The position numbers and the translations under genes were made by a program. From Anthoceros angustus (Eukaryota; Plantae; Anthocerotophyta): a DNA stretch of 64,000 nucleotides. This document shows, piece after piece, positions 10,682-27,440 of this stretch; within the stretch, counting starts at the first letter, position 1; every line of letters starts with the position of its first letter. The notes under the pieces are model-generated. The model did no database searches and was not told where the DNA came from. It was given only the letters and a program-made list of their open reading frames with translations. The stretch spans positions 124,001 through 188,000 of the forward strand of contig MU008195.1 of NCBI GenBank assembly GCA_010909165.1. Reading direction: 5' to 3'.

Positions 10682-11389
10682 TCACATGTAGCATCGCTCC
10701 TTTGCGAAGCAAATGGTGTACTTCTTGCATACCTTGCGAGCGCAGACAGCCCACGGGCTATGCTTCCGCTTTTTCTCCTTGACGTCTGGATTCAAGCAGA
10801 AACGGACTCCCTTGTAGCAGAAGCAGCATTTGCTGCCCCCGACCGAATAGTCGGGTGAGGGCGCCGGTGCATATCCTCCCGTATTCTTGGAGGGAGGATA
10901 CGGCCCGTTCCCGACGCAGCAGACGGTGGTGTTGCACACCCTCTGGCACTGCCCGACCGGGCGCTCCGGATTGATGCACACCTGCACCTTGTGGTGCTTG
11001 TAGCAGCAGCGCTTCCTGGCAGGCGGAGGCGGGAGGTTTACGTGAGGAGGCATCGCCGGCGCCGGCACCGGCACCGGCACCGGAGCCTTGTGCGGTGCCT
11101 GCACTGGAGCCTTGTGCGGGGCCGGCACTGGAGCCTTGTGCGGAGCCGGCGCCGGAGCCTTGTGCGGAGCCGGCACTGGAGCCTTAAGCGGAGCCGCCGG
11201 ATGCGGTGCTGAATTCGGTGCTGGATGTGGAGCCAGATGAGGTGCCGGATGCGGTGCTGGAAGCGGAGGATCCGGATCCGGATGCGGAGCCAGCCGCGGC
11301 GGCTTCGTCTCTGCCGGCTCGGCGAGTCCCGCCAGGAGCGAGAGTAGCAGCGTCACCAGCAGCAGAGCTTGGAGTCTCGAGCTTGCCAT
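10682..11389 (-). CDS. Secreted Pro/His/Ala-rich (AGP/PRP-like) protein with two C-terminal Cys-rich modules, intronless, 235 aa
   Basis: The first in-frame ATG is at 11389. A hydrophobic signal peptide (LQALLLVTLLLSLLAGLA) precedes APHP and KAPVPAPH repeats (24-bp DNA repeats at about 11090-11185) and 15 Cys in two similar modules. Confidence 0.85.
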   Translation of the reverse strand: MASSRLQALLLVTLLLSLLAGLAEPAETKPPRLAPHPDPDPPLPAPHPAPHLAPHPAPNSAPHPAAPLKAPVPAPHKAPAPAPHKAPVPAPHKAPVQAPHKAPVPVPVPAPAMPPHVNLPPPPARKRCCYKHHKVQVCINPERPVGQCQRVCNTTVCCVGNGPYPPSKNTGGYAPAPSPDYSVGGSKCCFCYKGVRFCLNPDVKEKKRKHSPWAVCARKVCKKYTICFAKERCYM

Positions 11390-12049
11390 GCCTGCAGCTG
11401 CAGTTATGGCCACTGCAGTGCAAGCGTCCTTGCCAAGATCTGCAAGCCAATTGCAACAGTGATGAGGGATTGCATCAAGGCCGGGTCATATGTACCTGCT
11501 GCTCGAGACTCCATGGCCAGAATCTCCAGATCTGCAGGTCAAATGCAACGACTGGGAGTCGGCGCCGATGCCCCTCCACTTGCATGCCCACATGCCTTGC
11601 TCCGTCGGCTGGCGCGGGCTTTCATGGATTCCCGCCTTTTTGCGGACCGCAGGCAGTATTCCATTGAAATGTAATTGTGCGAATTCGGGGCACGCGCGCG
11701 GCTGGCTCCAGGCTCCAGGCTCCAGGCTCTGGTGATCTGATCCTGATCTTGAGTCTGGCTCGTGGATCACTTTGTGCAAATTCGACCTTCCGAGCTCGTC
11801 GACCTTTTGGCCTCCAGTCCATAGCACCAGCATCTCGCCGTTATTCTGTCCTGCATTGGATGCCTCCCATATCCAGAATTGCGAATTCCATGTTACCTTG
11901 AGCTTATGGCAACCTTGTTTACAAGAGTACATACGCACCAGTTGTTCTGTCTTGCATTGAATGGCTCACATATCCAGGATTCCGATCCCATAACGTGGAG
12001 TTTATATGACAACCTGGAGTTTTCTCGCTTGCCGGGACGGATTTTTCTA

Positions 12050-14150
12050 TAGACGAGGAAATATCACAGATATGATTGACAGGTAAAAAACCGCCTAACC
12101 CCCATACAACCCAAAAGTCTCAATTTAGGCTTTCAATATTATCCAATAACATGTATAAAAATAATATATATCTGATTTTTACATCATTCTACTTCACTAA
12201 AATTTGGATTCAACAACATTTCCATCAAAAAATCTATTCGAAGATATGTTCGGAGGTCCATGCGGTCCCAGTCCGCATCTTGCGATAGTTCCAACCGGTG
12301 GGACAACTTCTCAACTAGTGATTCCATCCGTGACTCTTGATAAACGTACTTTGATGCTAACTTCAACAAACGTTTTAGCGTGTCGGTATCCGGTCTTAGA
12401 TTCAAAGTGGTTAAGCGCTTCCACTTCTCCCAATGACGGTCCATGCGGTCGATATCCGGCAGATATGGTTTACCCATCTATAGCGAACCAATACACAAAG
12501 AGAATTCAGCACATGCATAAAACATCAAAATAATAATATGAGCAAAACTAAACATACTTCCTAAGTCTGTCACAAAACTCCTTGATTTGCTAGTCACATC
12601 CAAACCAATTCCACACATGGACAAAATATATAAAATAAAAATAATAAACTGAGCAAAATTAAAACATACTACCTATATGGTCGCAAAACTCCTTGAGTTG
12701 CCAACCACATCCAAAGCAAGGTGGGGGTATGACCAAAAAGAAAGAAGAGTTGTTCTAAATTGTGATGCAGCCACACATATATACTCACCAAATCTGATCT
12801 ATTTCCGATAACGAAAGCTCATTCATCAATATATTACATTCATTACTCGCTCTCTTCACAAAAGCATAAATGTTTTAAAAACATTTTGTTTTTGCTTTTG
12901 CTTTTGTGAACAGAGCGATAAAAAACATTTTAATGGTTTTTGGTATCTCAGGATTTTTAAGTGTAGTTATTTTCAAGAAGATATTAAGTGTGCTTTACTT
13001 CAGTTTTTTTAATACTTCCAGTCAAAATATTTATGTTATAAATTTTATCATTGATAAATAATAACTTTTAATAACTTAAAGCAAACACTAACATAGAGCC
13101 AATGGTTGTGGCAACAGAGTGGAAGATGGAAAGAAACCATTGATGTGGGGGTCGGTCTCTCTCTCCTTCGTTTTATCTCTTGCCTAGCTTGGATAATGAG
13201 ATACCTTTGTCAAAGAATGCCTTTGGATAATGAGGATACCACTAATAAAAGAATGCTGAACCTAACCCCTCGATTGACAATACAGGGCGGTCTCGAAAAG
13301 CTACTACTAAGCACATGACCAATACATGGAAGTTGACCAAAAGACCTGATCATTGCATGGGAAGTTGACCCAAGCTCATTCAACGTCCTGAGAAAGTTGC
13401 CAAGGACATAATCATTATCTGGAAGCTAACCTAAGGACTTGTTCATTACATGGGAAGCAAATCTCACATGATTCAACATGTTGTCTCTAGACAAGAAATT
13501 ACCATGAAATCGAAGGCCTTACCATAGTTTAGTAGCTGGGTAACAAAAGGGAATTTGAACAAGCACCACACAATTACATTCTCTCTAAGATATCCTTCCT
13601 GGAAATTTAACTCAAACGAGAAGTTAAATGGCTCAAGTCAACTCCAACTTAAAACTCAGTAAATAAAAATATACGATCCATATCTTATGCAAGATATATT
13701 ACAAACCAAACCGTGACCAACTTGGAAAAGATGCAGGACGACAAAGACTAAAAATCAAAATATTATTTCAGATCACAAATAAAAAATTATAAAAAAAATA
13801 CAAAAGAAAACATAAAAACTCACCTCACTTAGTTGGTCTTTGCACGTTTGGGGCACACTTGTTTCCTACAACACGAAACCTTTTAGTCAGTAAGTAAATA
13901 AGTTCATGGAGTGAGACGGCAAGCTTTTGTTTTTGTTAACATGTCAAACTTTGTACCGAAGCCGAAGAAGAAGTGATAATATTAATATATATGCACAATA
14001 TGTATTATATGTACATTCTTGTGATAGTGTGATAAAAGATATAGAAATAATAAATTTTAAGAATGTAAGCCAGCATTTTGAAATATATTATGTACTTACC
14101 TATATAACTAGTATGAGGCGACACCGGATCACAGACAAGAGGGTGAGTTA
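12050..14150. other. AT-rich island with degenerate direct repeats; probable transposon remnant
   Basis: GC drops sharply relative to the flanking genes. There is an ~80-bp direct repeat (about 12529-12608 vs 12640-12719) and a degenerate ~32-bp tandem array at about 13325-13460. No transposase motif was recognised. Confidence 0.5.
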
Positions 14151-14907
14151 CGTGTAGGTATACGGTTGAGTGGGACGGTATGTGAAAGGGTTGCCCTATG
14201 TATCTCGTTTGCTCCATTTCAGTCCGAATCTTGCCGTGCTTTGTTTCATTCAGAATCCTGTCGTCCCTGTCTCGCTGAATCAATGTCTGAACTTGTGAGA
14301 ATTTGGCGGGTTACCTGTTTGGAAGCCATTGCATTGGATCCCGGCCCTCCAGAGGATTTCTGTGGCCGTGTGAGTGAAGACACGAGGAAGAGTTACAGCA
14401 CCTCCCCTGATGGCAGAGTGCTGCTTTGAGGACCACAAATGTTGTTGCGAGGCGAACGTGGATGGGACAGTGATGTAGGCGTTGGACGTTCTGGGTCTGC
14501 GTAGTATGGGGAAAAAATTCTGGATTCTGTAGCCGGATGTTAGGCCTGTGTTGCAGTTTTACCAGGAAAGCTGGCATGGCGGATACTCCGAAGGCTCTTG
14601 GTACTGTCTGCTCTGGAGGAAATCGGTGAACACCTCTCGAGGGAGTGCAATTGGGTAGAATCGTCAGGAGGTTGTGTGCTGGAGACATGGCAGAGTCCAA
14701 TGTCTATCCAGCTGACGAGATTTCGATGTGGGTGGCACTTGAGGAAGGTTGGAGGGTCTGTTCGGGAGCCAGCAATCCAGTTCTGCTAAGAGGGGTTTTC
14801 TGGCTGGGCTGGAGGCCATGGAATTTGGTGGAATATCGCACTCGAAGTGGTTGACGAGTAGAACTTTCTTGCTTCTTGTTGCGGCAGAATTCTGCAGTGC
14901 TGTTGTG

Positions 14908-17900
14908 ATGGGTCCACGGTCGAGGTCTGCTGGACAAGCTGCTACTAGAGTTCAGGGGGTATTCGAGGGGCTCGGTGAGCGAGGAGAGGTTGATGGTGAA
15001 AGGTTCAGAAGGCCAATGCAAGATGGACGAGGAAGCGGAAAGGTTGCAGCGGGAGCTCTGCGTTCTGGTGTAGGAAACCGTGCGCCGACTGACAGCGTGG
15101 AGAGGGAGAAACAGGGGGGGGATGAGACGGGGGTTGAAAGTGACACTCGTGTTTGCGGATCATTTGCAGCTGAGGCAACGGCAGCAGCTGTAGCAATGAT
15201 CGAGGAGAGCCTTATGAGGAAGACCTGCAGTGAGAGAGGGGTTCCTAGTTTGGATTCGGCTCCGAATGCAGGGGCTAAGCAGACAAGTGAAGTGCAAGAT
15301 CAGGAGGAGGAGGATATGGATGATGATGGAGATGCTGTTGACGATGAGACTGCTAAAGCTGCAGACTCTCCAGGGCTTAGACAGGTGAAGAATGCAGCTC
15401 TGCTCTCAAAGCTTGCGCCGCATAAGCTCAAGAAGAAAAGTCCTTGTCCAGATGTGCCTCTCTGTAGGCTGCGCAGTATGCAAATTGTAAGACCAATTTT
15501 GAAGCAGGAAGATGTCAATGAGGTGGCTTCAAGGTTCGCTTCTTCAGGCTACAATCGGCAAGCATGGCCCTTCTGGGTCTCTGTGATTGGGGAAGATTTG
15601 AGGGGAGCAGGGCCGTTGGAGCCAGATAAAGGAGATCAGTGGGATGATTGCTGGGAAGAGGTGGATGCCAAATTCCAAGAGGATCTGAGACAAGATGAAG
15701 AATGGAGTTTTTTGCAAGGAAAGATGCTCTGGGTCTGGGATGGAAATCACAGGCTGCAAGGCTGGCTTGAGGTGATCAGAACTCTGCACCCCAATGATCT
15801 GGATTGGCATGTTCGTGTGAAGGTGGAGGTGCTAGATGTAAATGAGAGTAATCGCATGCAAATTCTCCAAGCAGCTCATGGGCTGAATGAGTAAGCATCT
15901 TGCACGGCCATCGTTATCTGATTAGCAGTGGGTAGGTCCTGAGATGGAGAGGCAATCGTGAGAGCATGATCAGAACCTCTTTGTCGTAGGCACACCTAAA
16001 ACCCCTGTTCTGTTTCTATCATACACAGAAGAGTAATTCTGCAAATTTCCTTGCCATGGTTGTTGTGAGCAGGTTCATCGGATCTGGGCACGTGCAGACG
16101 AATGCATTGCATGAGATCTACTATGTTCAAAAGGTGGGTCTTGGACCTCTGGAACAATATGCATCTCGCCTCTCTGCCAAAGACCTGCAAGAATGCCAAA
16201 AGAAACTCCCACCTGACCAAGGAGGAACATGGTACTGTCTCACGTTGAATTCTCTGGTTGACATCCTAGCTGCAAATGACGTAATTGCTGAATCACACAA
16301 GGCTGCCTTGCGTTATGACAAATCGACTCCAGCAAACAATCAATCGGAGAAGAGTAGGGCTGAGGCTGTGGGAAAGGCTGTAGCAACTATCCGGAAGAAG
16401 ACAGGTAGTCGGCTTCTGAAATTGCTGCCTGTAGCAGATCCTCGGCTTGGTGAGGAGTGGCTGCAAGCCATCAAAGAGGGAGCGGGAAAGGGGATCTTGA
16501 AGGGGGGAGGTAAATGTAACTATAAGCTGGGCTCGGAAAAGCTTTATCACATTGCTGTGGCCAAGGTTCCGGCACATGCTAAGACTGAATGGGTCAGGCT
16601 TGGTACAGGGGATGAAGCTGAGAGATTGAGAAGAGGTTATCCAAAGCCGGTTCCCACTGAAATAGACTTCATAGAGTGGGTTGGGAGAGAGACATGGTGG
16701 TGGCAAGTGGAAGATCAGGCAGCCAGACTTGTGGCAGAGTTTGAAAACCAGGAGGTAGGGCCATTGGTAAAGCTGGCTGTGGGAACCACTGCAGCTCAGC
16801 CTCTTGGTCAGTGGTTGGAGGGCTGGAAGTGCAAGTACTACAAGCTCTTATTTGGGGAGCAGCTCAAGCGTGCAGATAAAAAGGCTTCTCTCAGCCAGCA
16901 GGAAGGTGGAGCTTTGGCAGCCAAGCGGATAGCATTCAGATATGTAAAGTATCTCTTAGATAAGGGATTTGCGGACAGGGAACCAGTTGGCCTTGCAGAG
17001 TTCAGGTCGGATGACTCAGAGCTAACCATGTATGATGATAATCAACGCCAAATCATGTCACTGTGGGAGGCAGAGAATTGCCCTTGGTGGTTGGATATGT
17101 CCAAGCCTCCTGAGGAAGAGAAGCACCTGTATGAAGACCACAAGGCGGGTCACCTGAGAGTCGCTTCCAGTGAAAGGACTCGAGAGGAAAAGGAAGTTGC
17201 AGTGCAAGCTGCGAAGGAGGCTGCTGCAAAAGCTGAGGCAAGAAGGATGCAGGAGTTGGGTCCTGTGAAGAACCTTAAGCGCAAGGCACAGAGACGGAAA
17301 CGAGAGCAATATGAAAAGGTGGAGGGTTCTCAAGGGGAGCAGTCAGATTGCAGCCAGATCCGCAAGAGGAGGAAGCCTGGCAGAACGATAAAGATACAGG
17401 CATACGTGGCCAGGGAAGCAGGAGAAGCAGCTCCAGAGGATGGAGGGGAGGGTTGGATGCAAAACAGTGATGGGCATAGGCCGTGGGGAAATTTGTTAAG
17501 ACAGGCCGACTACATGTGCCGGAACCTTCATTTACCTCAGAAACTTCCCGGGAAACATGTGGTTGCTGAAGTGGTTTGTGCTGCAGTGGATTATGTTGAG
17601 CTTGCTACGCAGCTGGAGCAGCACCAACGGGTGAAGGCTGCAAGAATTCAGGCAGAGAACAGAGGTGAAAAGGCTGCTGGGAGCAGCAATCAGTCGGGCA
17701 GGGAGCTGCCACTGCCTGCAGTATGGTTCGAGCTGGTCCACTTTCTCACCAGGAATGCAGGGGGCAGAGTTCCAAAGTGCGGGGGTATCCAGAGGAAGTG
17801 GGCAGCTGAGATGGTGCTCTGCGACGTCCCAACCGGACATCCTGTTCCTGGCTGCTCGGTCGACCTCGTCACGGTGCCCTCCTGGAACAAGTTCTCCCAT

Positions 17901-18769
17901 GAGCAGATTCCAAGGTGCATTCAGCTGGCAAGAGCAATACTGAGCGATAACGGCTGTTTGGTCATGGTAGCTCGGTCGACTGTGGACACCTGTGTTGAGA
18001 TACATCGGCATGTGCAATCAAACAAAATGAAAATTGCCAAGACATGGACAATAATACAGGAGCAACCTTTGGATCACGATCAGGGACAAGAGAAGAAGAC
18101 ATGCATGGTGCATTGCGTAGTTAGGAAGGACTGCAAGTTTGATTTCAGGCAACTTGTCCGCCCTATGGACCCTGATTTTGACCCCGTTACCACGGATATC
18201 TTGAGAAGTTTGGTGCCTCCGTGGGACTACACCAAGAGGAGAGAAACAGAAGGAGCACCACAATTCTTGTGGCGGGGAGGCAGAGAGAAGGCTCAATCTC
18301 TGTGGCAGCAACTGATCGAGTGTTGCACACTGGAGGGAGACCGAGTTGTTGACTTCACAGCAGGAACAGGCAAGCCGCAGTCAGACTGTGTATGTTGCAG
18401 CAGTTGATACAGAGCAGCTTTCTCACACACTCTTCTGGTGCAGGAGGGGCCATGATCGCTGCAGAGATCAGCGGTCGACACCTTTATGCCATGGAGCGTG
18501 ATGAGGAGTTAGTGCAGGAAGTCCTGTTTCACTTGCAGAGACGGCCGCAGGAGATGCTGCCTGGTCCCTCTTCCCCGTCTTCTGGTTCCGAGGTGTCCAG
18601 GCCGTATGTTTTGGACCCTTCTGTAAGAGTAATCCTAAACTGCAACCCAACTTCTCATCAGAATCCTCTCTTCCACGTTCCACCTCGTCTCTCATACTTG
18701 TCTTTCCCGTGCAGTATTTTTGAAGCTAGGAGAGTGAAGAATGCAAGCGACCATAGACACCAGTCTTGA
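14908..18769 (+). CDS. ParB/sulfiredoxin-like domain fused to a beta-class DNA amino-methyltransferase (N6-adenine/N4-cytosine family), ~1,160-1,200 aa, spliced
   Basis: Exons 14908-15890, 16073-18369 and 18444-18769 sum to 3606 nt in one frame; an optional in-frame intron lies at 18604-18714. ParB-like motifs: VPLCRLRSMQIVRPI and WVWDGNHRL (15739-15753). MTase motifs: VLCDVPTG (motif IV position, 17823-17834), then EKAQSLWQQLIECCTLEGDRVVDFTAGTGGAMIAAEISGRHLYAMERDEE (motifs X, I and II). An upstream ATG at 14818 is an alternative start. Confidence 0.82.
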
Positions 18770-19114
18770 CACTACGTGGCTCCTTGTGTATAGTACAAAG
18801 TCAAGCCCTCAATTCTTGCGCAGAGCCGAGAGGCGGTGAGAGCTCACAATAAAGTCCCAAGCCCATCAACGGCTCTTGGCGTCTGCACGGCTTCCGAAGC
18901 CAGAATTTCTTCACACATGACAAGACGGCCCTCTTTCACAGCATGTCTGATTAGAAGATCGACCGGAGCATAGTCACGTTGATAAAAGCTTCCCCAGCCT
19001 CCAAAGAGGCGGGAGACTGTGTTCTCGTCGTGTCCCGGTGCCGGCACTGTATGAAAGAAGCCGGTACAGCGCTGAAACAAAGTTGGTATGCAGAACGACA
19101 AACTTGAGGATGTA

Positions 19115-20095
19115 TCATCTTGGAGTGACCCTTCGCCGTGGTCTCAGTGTCTCCCGTCTCAAAAACTCCTTCTCCAGGTCATTCAGTGGCCGTTGCGTAC
19201 CATCCGGCAAGGCTATGAAGCGCCTTCCCCCCCCGTGCTTTCCTCTTTTCCCCTCTGAGCCAAGCTCCTCCACCACATAGCTCCACCCTTCAGCCGGCCT
19301 CCGGCGAGACAGCATACCGGTCTTAACAACTCCAGAAATCTAAAACCAAAGCCGGACATTCTCAGTCTACCATCCAAAACACCACCCACACACATTGCTC
19401 ATCACTCCACTCTGATCCCCTAACATCACAAACGAAAACACACTTACAATCTTCTTATTGAAGCTCATCCGCTGCTCGAACTCCTCCACCAGCATCTGCT
19501 CCTCCTTAGACAAAACCGCTCCTTGCTGCTGCTGCTCCACCCCCCCTCCTACAGCTGCAGCTGCCCCCCAGTCCTGCACAGCGCCATACCGCTCCCCGTC
19601 CCCGAAATCGTGCGAGCTGGCAGGCCATGGCAACACAAACACATCAGCTGCAGCTGCAACCTCAAACCCCCGGGACGCACATGCCCACATTCCCACGCAC
19701 ACTCACCCGTGGATCTCCGCAAATTCCTTCTCCAACGCATCGTCAAGGGGCGCGCCGCTGGCAGCCTCCGCCCGCTTCTCCCCTTCCTTGAGCCACAGTA
19801 TGGCGTGCACCCGCTGCCTGGACACCCGGAACTCCGCCGCCAGCCTCTCCACAGTGCTCGGCCCCGGATTGTCCGAATGCGTCCTCCAAATCGTCTCCTT
19901 GCTCTTGTCCGACAAGCAAGCCGCCTTCAAATCGGGCTCAATCCCGTTGAAGTTGTAGATCATCGGCCTCTCCACATCCGCATCAGCATTTCCCACGATC
20001 GATCGAGCTCCCGCTCCCGCTCCAGCTCCAGCTCCAGCTCCAATTGAAACCCTAGCTCGCAGCAGCGCGCCGGCCGCGCGCCCGAGACGCAGCAT
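19115..20095 (-). CDS. Mitochondrial small-subunit ribosomal protein mS45 (Bot1p-like), multi-exon
   Basis: Arg/Ala/Gly-rich presequence MLRLGRAAGALLRAR, then VERLAAEFRVSRQRVHAILWLKE, EEFEQRMSFNKK and a last exon SRRRPAEGWSYVVEELG...PDGTQRPLNDLEK, matching the plant mS45 pattern as I recall it. Confidence 0.8.
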
Positions 20096-20377
20096 GAGCG
20101 AGGCTCGCTCCTCTCCACCCCGTCCCTCCAAACTCGCGCGCGGAGTTGGAGTTGGAGGTGGCGATGGCGGATTCTAGGGCTCCGCGTCCGTGCGCCAGTC
20201 CGTTGGTCCGGACACCGGACTCCGTTCTTCCCTCGCTTTTCCAAGACACGGCTCACGCGTCTCGAGTCGCGTCGCATTCGTGTTCGCGTCTCATCTTGCC
20301 GTTCGCCTGCTGCTTGCTGTCGGTTTGTAGAGAAGGGAATCGAGGTTCAGGCGATGGCAGTGTGAAGGCGGCCGGGC

Positions 20378-23300
20378 ATGGCGAGAGACGCCTTCTCGTC
20401 CCCGAAGCGCAGGCTCCCCGTGAGCCCGGGGCTATGGCGGGCAGGTGGTTCCCAGCCGAAGCGTCTTGATTTTGTGAGCGGTAACGCAATCGCGGGCTCG
20501 AGCAGCTCCTTTGACGAGCTTGACGATCCGCTCAGGAACGCGCGCAAGAGCAGGCCTAGGCCGGGTCCGGGTCCGCAATCGGACGACTCGGACGACGACG
20601 TCGTGCTTGTCGCGAGGCCTCCCGCCCAGGTCACCAAGAAGGCCAGGGTCGGAGCCCGGGCTCTCCCGGCTGCGGATGCCGGGGGCCTGCATGCAAGCCA
20701 TGCCGACCCCGGGCTGCCGCCTCCTTCCAGAAAGCTTCCCGGCCATGGCGCTGCCAGGAAAATGCAGCAGGGTTCCAAGCTTAGCTTCGGGTCCAGCCAT
20801 AGCTGGGAGCGGCAATTGGGCGTTGGGGGAGGGCAGGGGCGGAGGTGGGAGGAGGGGTATGCAGGTGGGTCGGAGAGCGAGGAGGAGGAGGGGCCTCTTT
20901 CTCGGGAGCAGGGGGCGGGTTCCGGTGGTTTGGGAGGAAGGGATAGTGACTACGAGGACTATCTGTCGGAAAGAAAGGATGGTCAGGTGAAGGGGAGCCT
21001 GCTGGGCAGAAGCTCGGGGCATGCTGGGCAGCAGAGGAGTTCTTGGGGACGGGAACCTGCTGGGGAGGAGAGGATGGTGAGGGTGGAGCAGGGGAGGACC
21101 AGTAGTAGGGGGTCTGGGAGGATGGAGGGGAGAGGGGCGGGGTTGAGGGATATGAATGGGGAGAGCCGGCCTCCTCCCCCGAAGATGGTGGGGCTTGGGA
21201 GGCGGGATGTGGAGGGCGAGGAGGGGGCTGGGACTGTTGGAAGGCTGGTTGGGAGGCGGGAGATGGAGGATGAGAGCTTCGATGTCTTTTCTGAGCCGTG
21301 TGGGTCTGCCAGGAAGGGGCAAAAAGGGAGGAGAAGGAGGAGAGGCTGCAAGATATTGAACAGTGACAGCGATGATGACGATGTTCGTCCTCTTCCTCCC
21401 CCGAAGCTGCTGGCTACTGCGAACAGAGTGCTGCAGCAGAGGACAAGGCAGGACAGCGAGAGTAATGATGATGCCAAGCAGGGTTTTGTGGAGCAGCAGG
21501 GAAGGGCTCAAGTGGGCGTGAAGAGAGTAGGGAGGCCTCCCAGGAGGCGAGCTCTCAAGTCTTTGAAGGTGGGAGAATGGATTATTCGTCCTTTGCAGTA
21601 TGTGTACCTGCGGGCAGATCCGTCATCCAACTTCGAGTCGGATGAGGAGGTTGAGGACTGTCGCATTTGTGGGGAAGTGGATCTTGAGGCAAAGTTGGAG
21701 TGCGATGACTGCTTGGGTGGGTTTCACTTAGGGTGCTTGAATCCGCCTCTGAAGGAAGTGCCTGAGGGTGACTGGTTTTGCCCGCATTGCAAAAGACGTC
21801 GGAATGGGGAGGCAGTGGATGTGCCTGGCACAGCGGCCATGAACCGCCGTCGTACGGCCCGTGAACGGCTGCTTGCCAAGGAGTTGTCGGCTGTGCGCAT
21901 CTTGAAGTAAGCTTGAGTTTCATACGTTGCTGGTTTTGACTTTGATGTGCATCTAGGCTAGCTTGATCTCAATCACTTTCTGGAAATGTGCAGGATTTGG
22001 AAGGAACCGAATGGGAGTTCATGGTTTTCTGGGCAACGCTATCTTATACCCGAAGATACTCGGCATGGCAGACAGCCTGGGCATGGAAGGCGTGAACTTT
22101 TTCGCACGAATCGTATCAAAGAGTATGAGGTGCTGCTGCTGTGATTTGTAGCTTTGAAGAACTGCACGTAGGACTGCAATTCCTGTTTGTTCTCTTCTCT
22201 GGTGGGACTATTGAATGCAAGAATGATCTTGACAGCTACCTGTGACCTTTCTCTTGCAGACTAAAAACATTCTTCGGGAGTGTTTCATTACATCTTTTGC
22301 GGAGTTCATGTCACAAACAGATGGTGGTGACGACTGTTTCTTTTGTGCACAACAGTATGATGAGGAGTCCCATACCTTCAAGCCAGTGGAAGATATGGAC
22401 GACTTAGAGGATGGTGTGGCAAGTCCTGTGGAATTCGAGTTTTTGGAAGAGGAGGATGACTCAGACGATGTCCCTCGGAAACGTGGCTGTAGGCCAAAGA
22501 GAAAACCAGTAATAGACAAGGACGACTCAGATAATGGCCCTCCCAGGCGTGGTAGACCGAAGAAGAAACAAGGGGTGGCTGGAAGGAAACCAGGAAGCAG
22601 AACTCAAGGGAAAGCTAGGGAACCGAAGAATGGAAGCAAAACTTTGTCTACACCTGGAAAATCCGTCACACAGAAAGTCCAAGTCAGTGTTAAATCTGTG
22701 GTGAGCATCAGATCTTTTGTTGTACTTCACCTCCTGTCCGTTTGCATCTTTTTTCTTGTTGGTGAGTATTGAGGTTTCTGCTCCTGTACAAAACAAGCAG
22801 ATGAGCGCATATGAATGTGGGATGGGTGGGGCTCCAAAACAAATTCCACAAAGAGACGTTGAGGTCAATTTCAAAAAGGCAATTGATGCCCTCGATCTTG
22901 CTCCAGCTTCCCTGTCATGCAGAGAAAAGTACTACTTCACCCTTACGTTTTCATGAAATGGTCTAGACGTTAAACCAGATGGCGTTGCGCATCTTATTCT
23001 CTTCTGATTGAGGTCATCTACAGGGAAAGGGATGAAATTGAAAAATTTCTGAAGGATGCATTTGCTAAGGACAAGTGTCTGGGACGTTCTCTTTACATTA
23101 GTGGTATCCCTGGGACTGGCAAGGTGAGTCTTGAAGCTTCATTCCCTTCAATTTCTATACTTTGACAAGTAGGCTCTGCTGGTTTTCATGGGATTCCAGT
23201 TGCTGATGCCTCAAATTATGTTTCACATCCCAGACAGCGTTAGTCATGGAGGTCATCAGGGAGATGAAGAAGAGTACTGATCTTGCCTTTGTAAATATCA

Positions 23301-25212: not shown

Positions 25213-25300
25213 GGCGATTACAGGACCGAGGCGCTTCTTAGGTAGATAGTTTGATCTCCAGAAGGATATTTGTCCGATCCTGCCGTCCGGTCAGAAGGCC

Positions 25301-25510
25301 GAAAGGGGCCTCGCCCCCGGACACTGGAAGGGGCCTCGCCCCGGGATACTGAAAGCGGCCTCGCCCCTGGATACTGACAGGGGCCTCGCCCCTGGATACT
25401 GAAAGGGGCCTCGCCCCTGAATACTGAAAGGGGCCTCGCCCCTGAATACTGAAAGGGGCCTCGCTCCTGAATGCTGAAAGAGGCCTCGCCCCTGGATTCT
25501 GAAAGGGGCC
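25301..25510. repeat. 25-bp minisatellite, 8 full units plus a partial unit (consensus GAAAGGGGCCTCGCCCCTGGATACT)
   Basis: Units start every 25 bp from 25301 to 25501. Most contain the inverted repeat AGGGGC-CTC-GCCCCT. Confidence 0.95.
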
Positions 25511-25664
25511 GGCCTCGTTTCCCAAAGCTTCGTTGTTGGGAAACCGGGGCTGCTTAAGGAAACGGAGTAACAGCGTTGCGGAGAAAAACATCGCCGCCGT
25601 TTTAGGAAAGAGCAGGCATATTTCCTGTAGATAGTCTGGCCGAGTTCGAGGGAATGTGGTTCGA

Positions 25665-27440
25665 ATGGTAGACATGATTTCTACTTGCTCCTCCCGACCG
25701 CATGTTCTGTCCAAGGCAAGAGCAATTCCGTCATCGCAGCCGAATGCAGGGCCCAAGGTGGCGTATCTGCTATTCTCGCCCCACTCGGCTGAGTCTTGCA
25801 CAGCGCAGCACATCGATGGCAGGTTTCAGAAAGGTTGGGGGAAAAGAGATGCAAGACGTTTTCCGTTGGATGTCACTGGGGCCGGCAAGCAGAAATGCAG
25901 GTCACCCGTGTGCAGGGCATCCGTGTCGGATGATTCGGGCTCTGGAGATGTGGTGGAGGAGAAGCCATGGGTGCAATTTGTGACAGTGGCAACCAGCCTG
26001 TATCCGTTGTATGTGGCATTGGGGTCGACTTTGGCCATTCTGAGGCCATCGTCCTTTGCATGGTTTGTGGAGAGGAGTCCCCAGTCCTACAGCGCCGCTC
26101 TAGGCAGCATTATGCTGGCTATGGGTCTGACCTTGCGCTTACAGGACCTTGTGTATGTGCTGGTGAACCGTCCTCTCGCAGTAACTGCTTGAACCCAGAC
26201 CTTGTGAACTGTTGTGGGTTTTGGAAAATGCAGAATCTGTTTGGAGGCTAATTTGTTTTTCCATCTGCAGGTTCTCTTTGGATGTGCTGCTCAGTATGGT
26301 ATCATGCCCCTGACGGGAGCTGCGGTGGCTCGTCTGCTGGGACTGTCGCCAGAATTGTCTGCAGGTCTCATATTACTGGCGTGCTGTCCGGGTGGGACTG
26401 CGTCTAATGTGGTACATTTCACTTTCTGCCAGAAGTCATGAGTGCAGTAGCATGCTTGGAGCATCCCACCTGAACAGGCAGCTGTTTCCCAGGTCACCTT
26501 GATCGCTGAGGGGGATGTGCCGCTGTCCATATTGATGACCATCTGCACCACATTTGGTGCTGTCATCGCCACACCCTTGCTAACCCAGCTTTTTGCTGGA
26601 GCGTACGTCCCTGTGGATGTCGTTGGCCTTGCTATCAGTACATTACAGGTGTGTCACATTTCAGAATAGGAGCTTCTGCAGGGTTGTTCAGTGTTTGGTG
26701 GGATTCGTGTCTGACCAGTTGATGGGGAGGGGAGCAGGTCGTGTTGGTGCCAGTTCTACTAGGTGCTTGGCTTCAGGGTACTTGGCCAAAGCTAGTGGCT
26801 TACGTGAAACTGTTCTCGCCTCTGGTGGCAGTCCTCATCTCTTCCTTACTGTCAACCAGGTAGGGTAGTCATCGCTCAACAAGTACCTTGCATCTTGGAT
26901 CTGCTTGCAGGAAGTGCTTCACTTACTCCCTGCCTGTCACAGTGTGTTTTCAGCGAATGTGTATAAGATTAGAAGCCTCCCATCTGGGGCAGGACCTGCA
27001 TCCTTCATTGAAAGTGTGGCAGCAATCGCAGCTGCTGTTGCTTTAGTTCACGCTGTTGGTTTCCTGCTTGGGTAAGCACGCTGCCGATGCTATCTCCTGC
27101 CTTTGGGTCACTTCGCTTTTCGTAACATTTCGCGTGTGCTGACAGGTATGTTACGTCCAGAGCAGCAGGCTTGGGTGAAGCACAGCGGAGAGCAATTTCA
27201 ATCGAGGTACACAGGACGTGACTGCATCGTTCGAAATCCATTTTGTTTTCTTTACTGTAACCATCCTGTGATGGTGTCCCTCAGGTCGGGATGCAAAATT
27301 CGTCGCTGGGCGTCGTCTTGGCAAGCACGCATTTCAACTCACCACTTGCTTCAGTCCCTGCTGCTATCTCAGGCGTGGTTATGAACATTATGGCCAGCGC
27401 GTTAGCCGTCGCCTGGAGACAATACCGCATTAAGGGTTAA
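25665..27440 (+). CDS. Plastid bile acid:sodium symporter family (BASS) sodium/metabolite cotransporter, multi-exon
   Basis: Ser/Arg-rich transit peptide, then IMLAMGLTL, LFGCAAQYGIMP, GLILLACCPGGTASNVV and EGDVPLSILMT, ending VMNIMASALAVAWRQYRIKG*. The start ATG is 25665 or 25674. Confidence 0.92.

Follow-up and report, generated by a model that had tools for sequence, protein, structure and literature searches.

The window analyzed here is a 64-kb stretch of DNA from Anthoceros angustus (contig MU008195.1, positions 124,001-188,000), and it contains a gene whose product combines a ParB-like domain with a beta-class DNA amino-methyltransferase domain. All gene coordinates given below are window positions, on the plus strand unless stated otherwise. 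The coding sequence is made up of three exons (14908-15890, 16073-18369 and 18444-18769), which together form a single frame of 1201 amino acids (aa) without internal stops. They are separated by a GT-AG intron of 182 nt (intron 1, 15891-16072) and a GC-AG intron of 74 nt (intron 2, 18370-18443). Exon 1 encodes residues 1-327 plus two further nucleotides, and comprises a low-complexity N-terminal third followed by the ParB/Srx domain (residues 175-327; 15430-15888). Exon 2 encodes a family-specific middle region (from residue 328 to residue 880 or so) and the greater part of the methyltransferase domain (residues about 890-1125; 17757-18538), which is interrupted by intron 2; exon 3 supplies the remainder of motif I, motif II (AMERDEE) and a C-terminal helix. 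A Lys/Arg-rich stretch that resembles a nuclear localization signal (NLS) is present in the translation at residues 727-765 (17268-17384; KNLKRKAQRRKREQYEK...IRKRRKPGR). A sequence-only reading of this stretch had predicted three exons in one frame encoding about 1,200 aa, spliceosomal introns and a basic NLS-like stretch, and each of these was borne out by the translation and by the RNA evidence described below. The motifs named in that reading were also found in the translation: VPLCRLRSMQIVRP, WVWDGNHRLQGW, VLCDVPTG and DFTAGTG/GAMIAAE, where the slash marks intron 2.

Both splice junctions are present in RNA contigs. The junction between 15890 and 16073 was found without mismatches in contigs from the same organism (run X1), and was also found in RNA contigs of the related taxa B and C. 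The X1 contigs skip 74 nt at a junction reported as 18366/18441, with an ambiguity of 4 nt, which is consistent with 18369/18444. Spliced RNA was seen in three taxa (A, B and C), and exon 1 is represented in the RNA of all three. One X1 contig is continuous from 14231 to 15773 and defines a transcribed 5′ leader (14231-14907), in which the open reading frame (ORF) is open from 14749 and an alternative in-frame ATG is located at 14818. A third, optional intron (18623-18714, GT-AG) is removed in one RNA contig (junction 18622/18715); in this fully spliced form coding exon 3 spans 18444-18622, the coding sequence ends at 18715-18723, and the product has 1155 aa and the terminus ...YVLDPSYF. Another RNA contig keeps 18623-18714 unspliced, and its ORF continues to a stop at 18767-18769. 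The ParB and methyltransferase domains are unaffected by the third intron and by the leader extension. In one RNA contig the acceptor at 16073 is joined to another donor, at 15771, which lies 120 nt upstream of the usual one; the resulting isoform is frameshifted, stops inside the ParB domain after 301 aa and may be non-productive.

A separate observation concerns a 635-nt piece of exon 2 (16719-17353). One X1 RNA contig matches this piece and carries unrelated sequence for 255 nt on each side, and a DNA contig of organism C also ends nearby, at 17357. The RNA contig could be derived from a partial duplicate elsewhere, from a chimeric transcript or from an assembly artefact.

The fold of the N-terminal domain was examined by modelling aa 175-327 of the window protein itself with AlphaFold. 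The model had a predicted local distance difference test (pLDDT) score of 86.4 and a predicted template modelling (pTM) score of 0.82. The top 50 Foldseek matches to it were nearly all ParB, Noc, KorB, Srx, SbnI or serine-kinase chains, with probabilities of 0.99-1.00 for ParB, Noc and Srx and E values of about 1e-2. VIA Z values of 8-9.3 were obtained against the N-domains of ParB, Noc and KorB, including 9.3 for Myxococcus xanthus ParB (root-mean-square deviation 2.1 Å over 90 residues). No Pfam or NCBIfam ParB match was found in the exon pieces, each exon being searched separately. A PDB profile search with a four-sequence ParB alignment also gave no match, and the fold was therefore demonstrated by structure prediction instead. 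On the strength of the model, the N-terminal domain is a predicted ParB/Srx fold. A feature search gave a concordant indication, leading to fungal DUF3723-like clusters, the models of which resemble ParB and DndB. The domain carries variant motifs (IPLCRL..VRP, WDGNHR and AAHGLN). Across the family described below, IPLCRL, WDGNHR and H.LN are well kept, with the Asn and His of WDGNHR present in at least 90% of rows. WDGNHR is taken to be the counterpart of the G-x-x-R phosphate-binding motif, which reads GERR in ParB, GCHR in Srx and DGQHR in DndB-like proteins.

The C-terminal domain was compared with known enzymes using a family profile built from 13 C-terminal domains, the window's included. 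The profile matched CcrM (PDB 6pbd), an adenine methyltransferase of the beta class, over the whole domain (CcrM residues 31-252; E=1.2e-11), and it also matched the motif I regions of DpnA-type, N4C, MboIIA, PvuII and RsrI enzymes. In the register of the CcrM match, the family sequence DLVvlDvPeG lies on VDLIFADPPYN (motif IV), PWRGgrEK lies on AHPTQKP, and GDiVvDltagtG lies on GDVILDPFFGVG (motif I). In the window protein the motif IV position is occupied by DVPTG (17823-17837), aligned to the DPPY of CcrM, and motif I, the binding loop for S-adenosylmethionine (SAM), reads DFTAGTG/G and is split by intron 2 (18351-18448).

A structural comparison used the Ceratodon homologue (P0005:420-665), modelled with AlphaFold (pLDDT 83) from a family alignment in which the window sequence is one row. 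Foldseek matched this model to CcrM, M.BceJIV, M1.HpyAVI, the rotifer methyltransferase N4CMT, RsrI, PvuII and MboIIA, with E values down to 5e-13 and a TM score of 0.64. Searches with single exons were silent: no Pfam or NCBIfam methyltransferase match was found in the three exon pieces, motif I being split by intron 2, and phmmer searches of the exon pieces against PDB sequences gave no match. Several relatives matched Pfam N6_N4_Mtase (PF01555) weakly over the last 50 profile positions. Two of these were narrowly above the cut-off of 26.7 bits (P0031, 31.7 bits; P0034, 27.6 bits), in the C-terminal 50 residues only. A permuted beta-class DNA amino-methyltransferase fold, in which motif IV precedes motif I, is supported by the profile match and the homologue model, and the ParB-like plus permuted beta-class architecture proposed from the letters alone is upheld by the two sets of predictions.

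The active site of this putative enzyme is atypical. Motif IV of the window protein is DVPT, where (D/N/S)PP(Y/F/W) would be expected. The same is true of the family: all 13 aligned members have [DNQ]-hydrophobic-P-x-[GSN] at this position, and both the first proline and the aromatic residue are absent. Retained are the SAM loop DFTAGTGG and the acidic motif II AMERD, which align to DPFFGVG and GIERE of CcrM, together with the WN motif and the Lys of the HPTQKP-like motif. Judged from these motifs, the methyltransferase fold and cofactor site look functional, and standard base-stacking catalysis would not be expected. True catalysis by the domain is rather doubtful, though possible. The sequence-only reading had proposed a writer of N4-methylcytosine (4mC) or N6-methyladenine (6mA) comparable to DN4MT1 of Marchantia (MpDN4MT1) and to N4CMT. 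This claim is not supported, motif IV being DVPT without an aromatic residue and MpDN4MT1 having TSPPY; such writing is unproven because motif IV has the DVPT form in every family member examined.

Relatives of the protein were sought in several collections. An exhaustive search of cluster representatives returned 36 weak relatives (22-33% identity), and those looked up came from Riccia sorocarpa, Ceratodon purpureus, Adiantum, Taxus, Cryptomeria or read assemblies. All relatives whose identities were checked were from land plants or from metagenome or read-assembly contigs (22-40% identity), and among these the exhaustive search contained no prokaryotic protein at E<=0.001. A word-indexed search with the methyltransferase profile returned six proteins, all from plants or metagenomes and none prokaryotic. 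The same kind of search with exon 2 gave no match, not even to the protein itself, in a collection without the proteins of this genome. A search with the ParB domain yielded 30 further proteins. Relatives from Riccia, Ceratodon and metagenomes share the positions of intron 1 and of the intron within motif I, and the ORF fragments of many relatives stop directly after the '..TG' that precedes intron 2. Because these intron positions are common to family members, the family appears to have been eukaryotic for a long time. Within the library that could be searched, no publication on this ParB-methyltransferase family in land plants was found.

In other land plants the family is multi-copy. At least 20 separate fragments are distributed over several chromosomes in Riccia, and Ceratodon has at least five near-identical copies, including one whose record is labelled VG. 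These copies group in the tree as species-specific bursts with short branches. In one locus of each species an opposite-strand ORF of about 560 aa is located upstream of the ParB-methyltransferase gene, in head-to-head orientation (Riccia, L001:5873-7588, minus strand; Ceratodon, L002:3-1667, minus strand). The two partner ORFs are homologous (28% identity; E=1e-34). A Pfam search with the partner ORF gave no match; its protein-language-model features were nearest to those of Mutator-like element (MULE)-type transposases (score 0.95, 178 shared features). The identification of the partner as a transposase, and as one of MULE type, is a lead rather than proof.

The Anthoceros copy has a different setting. 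Searches of the window by tblastn with the Riccia and Ceratodon partner ORFs gave noise (all E values at least 0.78), no paralogue of the gene was found in the window, and Pfam searches found no transposon domains in neighbouring ORFs. The neighbours are host genes, encoding Bot1p-like, PHD-finger, KH, histidine-phosphatase, F-box, epimerase, SPRY-CTLH and mannosidase-like proteins. The housekeeping surroundings described by the sequence-only reading, without a transposase or a convincing terminal inverted repeat, were thus confirmed. One candidate pair of terminal inverted repeats (14511-14535/18888-18912; 25 nt, 84% complementary) was rejected, since it was not superior to the other, chance pairs listed with it. 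It is the sole listed pair that brackets the gene, and both of its arms are inside transcribed sequence.

The locus is shared with related taxa. In organism B a single 10.9-kb DNA contig covers 14159-19500, which comprises the gene and its Bot1p-like neighbour, and in organisms C and D this stretch is covered by tiled DNA contigs. In the more distant organism E, contigs cover 14425-18628 and, separately, parts of the Bot1p-like neighbour. DNA-contig depth is uniform and contigs are unbroken across the gene in related taxa, which points to a single copy.

The upstream boundary of this shared stretch was also observed. Homology to the window stops at 14158/14159 in B, C and E, and at 14018 in D. 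A 2.1-kb AT-rich block (12060-14158; GC content about 0.36) lies directly upstream of the gene, while B and C share one unrelated sequence upstream of 14159 that is absent from the window; the synteny is seen on the downstream side. The block is probably a lineage-specific insertion or replacement in Anthoceros.

Sequence divergence between the taxa provides evidence on selection. Across 1963 nt of exon 2, organism D has 62 substitutions and no gap letters; in the two flanking pieces the gap letters number 38 and 49. Divergence from organism B amounts to 9.5% in the 5′ flank (40 of 423 positions) and to 4.8% over the whole 5.3 kb. The exon 2 differences listed for organism C include two that are synonymous and one V>I. 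In a simple simulation of neutral divergence, in which indels were not counted, the probability that a 3.6-kb ORF stays free of stops fell from 0.09 to 0.0003 as divergence rose from 1.6% to 5% per lineage.

These observations are best accounted for if the ParB-methyltransferase gene is transposon-derived, has lost its transposon and is now a single-copy host gene, i.e., if it has been domesticated; this reading is held with moderate confidence. Domestication of this copy is supported by synteny across the related taxa, by the indel-free exon 2 and by expression. Retention at a fixed locus points to host-level selection, because an immobile copy cannot persist by transposition. Several points weigh against this reading. 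Against organism D, exon 2 has a substitution level of 3.2%, little lower than the roughly 4% of the 5′ flank, and because exon 2 diverges nearly as fast as the flank, amino-acid constraint on it may be weak. The codon-level view of the related taxa covers 40 of 727 differences. The identity of the partner ORF as a transposase rests on a feature search, Pfam having returned nothing. The lack of an aromatic residue in motif IV of every family member argues, from the alignment, against standard catalysis. It is conceivable in light of such points that the gene is instead inert cargo: a fossil left by a non-autonomous or decayed transposon and fixed in an ancestor, with an ORF that stays open by chance or by weak non-host selection, and with no host function. 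The transposon-linked, multi-copy state of the family in other plants, the near-flank divergence of exon 2, the frameshifting splice form and the weak inverted pair around the gene are all compatible with this. However, a fossil would hardly be expected to be syntenic in four other taxa, to be free of gaps over about 2 kb of exon 2 between indel-rich flanks, to keep an ORF that neutrality would leave stop-free with a probability of 0.09 or lower, or to give correctly spliced transcripts in three taxa, and the inverted pair is no better than chance pairs and has its arms in transcribed sequence. Inert cargo is considered unlikely. The sequence-only reading had itself raised the case of a gene that is one of many copies in a transposon family; the family in other land plants is indeed multi-copy and linked to a transposase-like ORF, but no transposase accompanies the gene at this locus.

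A further alternative is that this plant lineage acquired a ParB-methyltransferase directly from a bacterium or phage and domesticated it as a dedicated 4mC or 6mA writer, in the manner of DN4MT1 and N4CMT. Such an origin would fit an architecture typical of phages, a feature search that placed the protein near phage ParB_N+N6_N4_Mtase clusters (score about 0.80), fold matches that include rotifer N4CMT, and SAM-binding motifs that are intact. It is nevertheless very improbable: the nearest relatives are without exception plant genes that share the intron positions and the long middle region of the Anthoceros gene, these relatives are transposon-linked, no prokaryotic protein reached the exhaustive-search threshold among the identities checked, motif IV is DVPT rather than the TSPPY of MpDN4MT1, and tblastn searches against phage genomes gave marginal methylase matches with E values of 2e-3 or weaker. 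Of the proposal that the gene was horizontally acquired and domesticated, the domestication is supported, on the evidence of synteny, the indel-free exon 2 and expression; direct transfer creating a host system is not, the family being multi-copy and linked to a transposase-like ORF in other land plants. The origin of the gene is better described as a eukaryotic transposon accessory gene, ultimately of prokaryotic type.

If the gene is a domesticated accessory gene, the following sequence of events may be envisaged. The ancestral protein would have acted in the service of a DNA transposon, whose DNA it bound and marked. One copy would have been fixed before the split of these taxa and since kept by host-level selection. 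Its product, of roughly 1150-1200 aa and with a disordered N-terminus, is probably nuclear, import being suggested by the Lys/Arg-rich stretch in the family-specific middle region of about 550 aa. The ParB/Srx domain, as a nucleotide-binding, DNA-associated module, may act with the middle region in loading the protein onto DNA, and SAM would be bound by the methyltransferase domain. This domain might then either methylate an exocyclic amino group via its atypical active site, or serve as a non-catalytic SAM- or DNA-binding module, as METTL14 does for METTL3.

The second of these options amounts to a pseudo-enzyme, in which the methyltransferase domain is a SAM sensor or DNA-binding scaffold and the activity comes from the ParB domain (NTP-dependent DNA clamping, NTP being nucleoside triphosphate, or nuclease activity). 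It concerns function only, and is compatible with domestication. The loss of the motif IV aromatic residue and first proline in 13 of 13 family members and the good preservation of the ParB motifs across the family both favour it, and METTL14, which carries EPPL at motif IV and is described as inactive (PMC4738411), provides a precedent. Set against this, the Asp and second Pro of motif IV, WN, PWRG..EK and the SAM loop are kept across mosses, liverworts, ferns and conifers, as would be expected of a working active site under constraint. A pseudo-enzyme is considered quite possible, if somewhat short of an even chance. The more specific proposal that the domesticated cargo gene is now a host chromatin factor, a NTP-dependent ParB-type clamp that writes or reads 6mA or 4mC through the D-x-P-x-G site, is distinctly less likely and is put forward with considerable doubt; if true, it would mean that beta-class methyltransferases include a new catalytic variant and that plants have a new pathway of DNA modification.

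Further features were recorded around the gene. The convergent Bot1p-like gene (18715-20131, minus strand; introns 19340-19447 and 19617-19706) encodes a putative mitochondrial regulator or ribosomal protein, and its 3′ end overlaps the 3′ end of the ParB-methyltransferase gene. Since the Bot1p-like transcript contig starts at 18715, it shares 55 nt with the end of the unspliced ParB-methyltransferase ORF. The first gene past it (20378-21910, plus strand) is an ORF of 510 aa, in which a long low-complexity N-terminus precedes a C-terminal PHD finger (E=4.6e-9). A tandem array of about 10 units of 25 nt (GAAAGGGGCCTCGCCCCTGGATACT-like) is present at 25276-25525, inside a minus-strand ORF (25238-25813) that had no Pfam match. 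Tandem repeats of 24 nt and 12 nt, rich in GCC/GGA, are present at 11042-11266, inside another minus-strand ORF without a Pfam match (10682-11413), and look like a low-complexity coding repeat.

Plants are not known to methylate DNA other than at cytosine C5, with 4mC in Marchantia sperm as the sole exception. A conserved and expressed host gene with both folds would therefore be a candidate for another plant DNA-marking or mark-related activity. Its D-x-P-x-G motif IV raises the question of whether a beta-class methyltransferase can be active without the aromatic residue, or whether the protein is a conserved pseudo-enzyme. The gene would also be, if the proposed history is true, a rare case of domestication of a transposon accessory gene. 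FHY3/FAR1 and MUSTANG are domesticated plant transposon genes that are syntenic, expressed and conserved, and that lack transposon ends; they are derived from transposases, whereas the Anthoceros gene would be derived from an accessory (cargo) gene with DNA-modification folds.

Among prokaryotic systems, phage and bacterial ParB_N+N6_N4_Mtase fusions, CcrM, M.RsrI and M.PvuII provide the same domain order, the ParB/Srx fold, the permuted methyltransferase fold and the SAM motifs. The plant protein is about three times longer than the fusions, with a 550-aa insert between the domains and spliceosomal introns; its motif IV is DVPT where theirs is DPPY or SPPY, and the window pieces have no Pfam ParB_N or N6_N4_Mtase match. 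In eukaryotes, MpDN4MT1 and rotifer N4CMT (PDB 8s9m) are likewise genes with a prokaryote-type beta-class amino-methyltransferase fold, a likeness at the level of fold only. MpDN4MT1a and MpDN4MT1b are a tandem pair with a canonical TSPPY and late-spermiogenesis expression (bioRxiv 10.1101/2021.02.12.428880). The Anthoceros protein differs from MpDN4MT1 and N4CMT in its DVPT motif, its ParB domain and its transposon-linked family. Orthology with either is not indicated, N4CMT being one of many beta-class fold matches.

The Ectocarpus giant transposon Sola1-1_Ec32 carries a 1104-aa ParB plus methyltransferase accessory gene on the strand opposite to its transposase (Genome Biol 2025, PMC12477816). 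Compared by description, the Ectocarpus and Anthoceros proteins are alike in being eukaryotic, in their length (about 1100-1200 aa) and in combining an N-terminal ParB-like domain with a prokaryote-type N4C/N6A methyltransferase domain, and the placement of the gene opposite a transposase resembles that of the Riccia and Ceratodon relatives. The Anthoceros copy differs in having no transposase, in being single-copy and syntenic in related taxa, and in its land-plant host. In red-algal Plavaka transposons, PAG3 combines ParB with a 2-oxoglutarate (2OG) oxygenase and has been proposed to bind, and to modify, the element that carries it (bioRxiv 10.1101/2025.02.11.637652); here an oxygenase takes the place of the methyltransferase and the gene is still transposon-borne. 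The present family suggests that accessory genes of ParB and a modification enzyme, so far described from brown, red and green algae, are also widespread in bryophytes, ferns and gymnosperms. The combination of ParB with a DNA-modifying enzyme as a transposon accessory protein is thus of a known kind; what is new is the land-plant family, its family-wide alteration of motif IV and, in Anthoceros, a solo copy that is syntenic and expressed.

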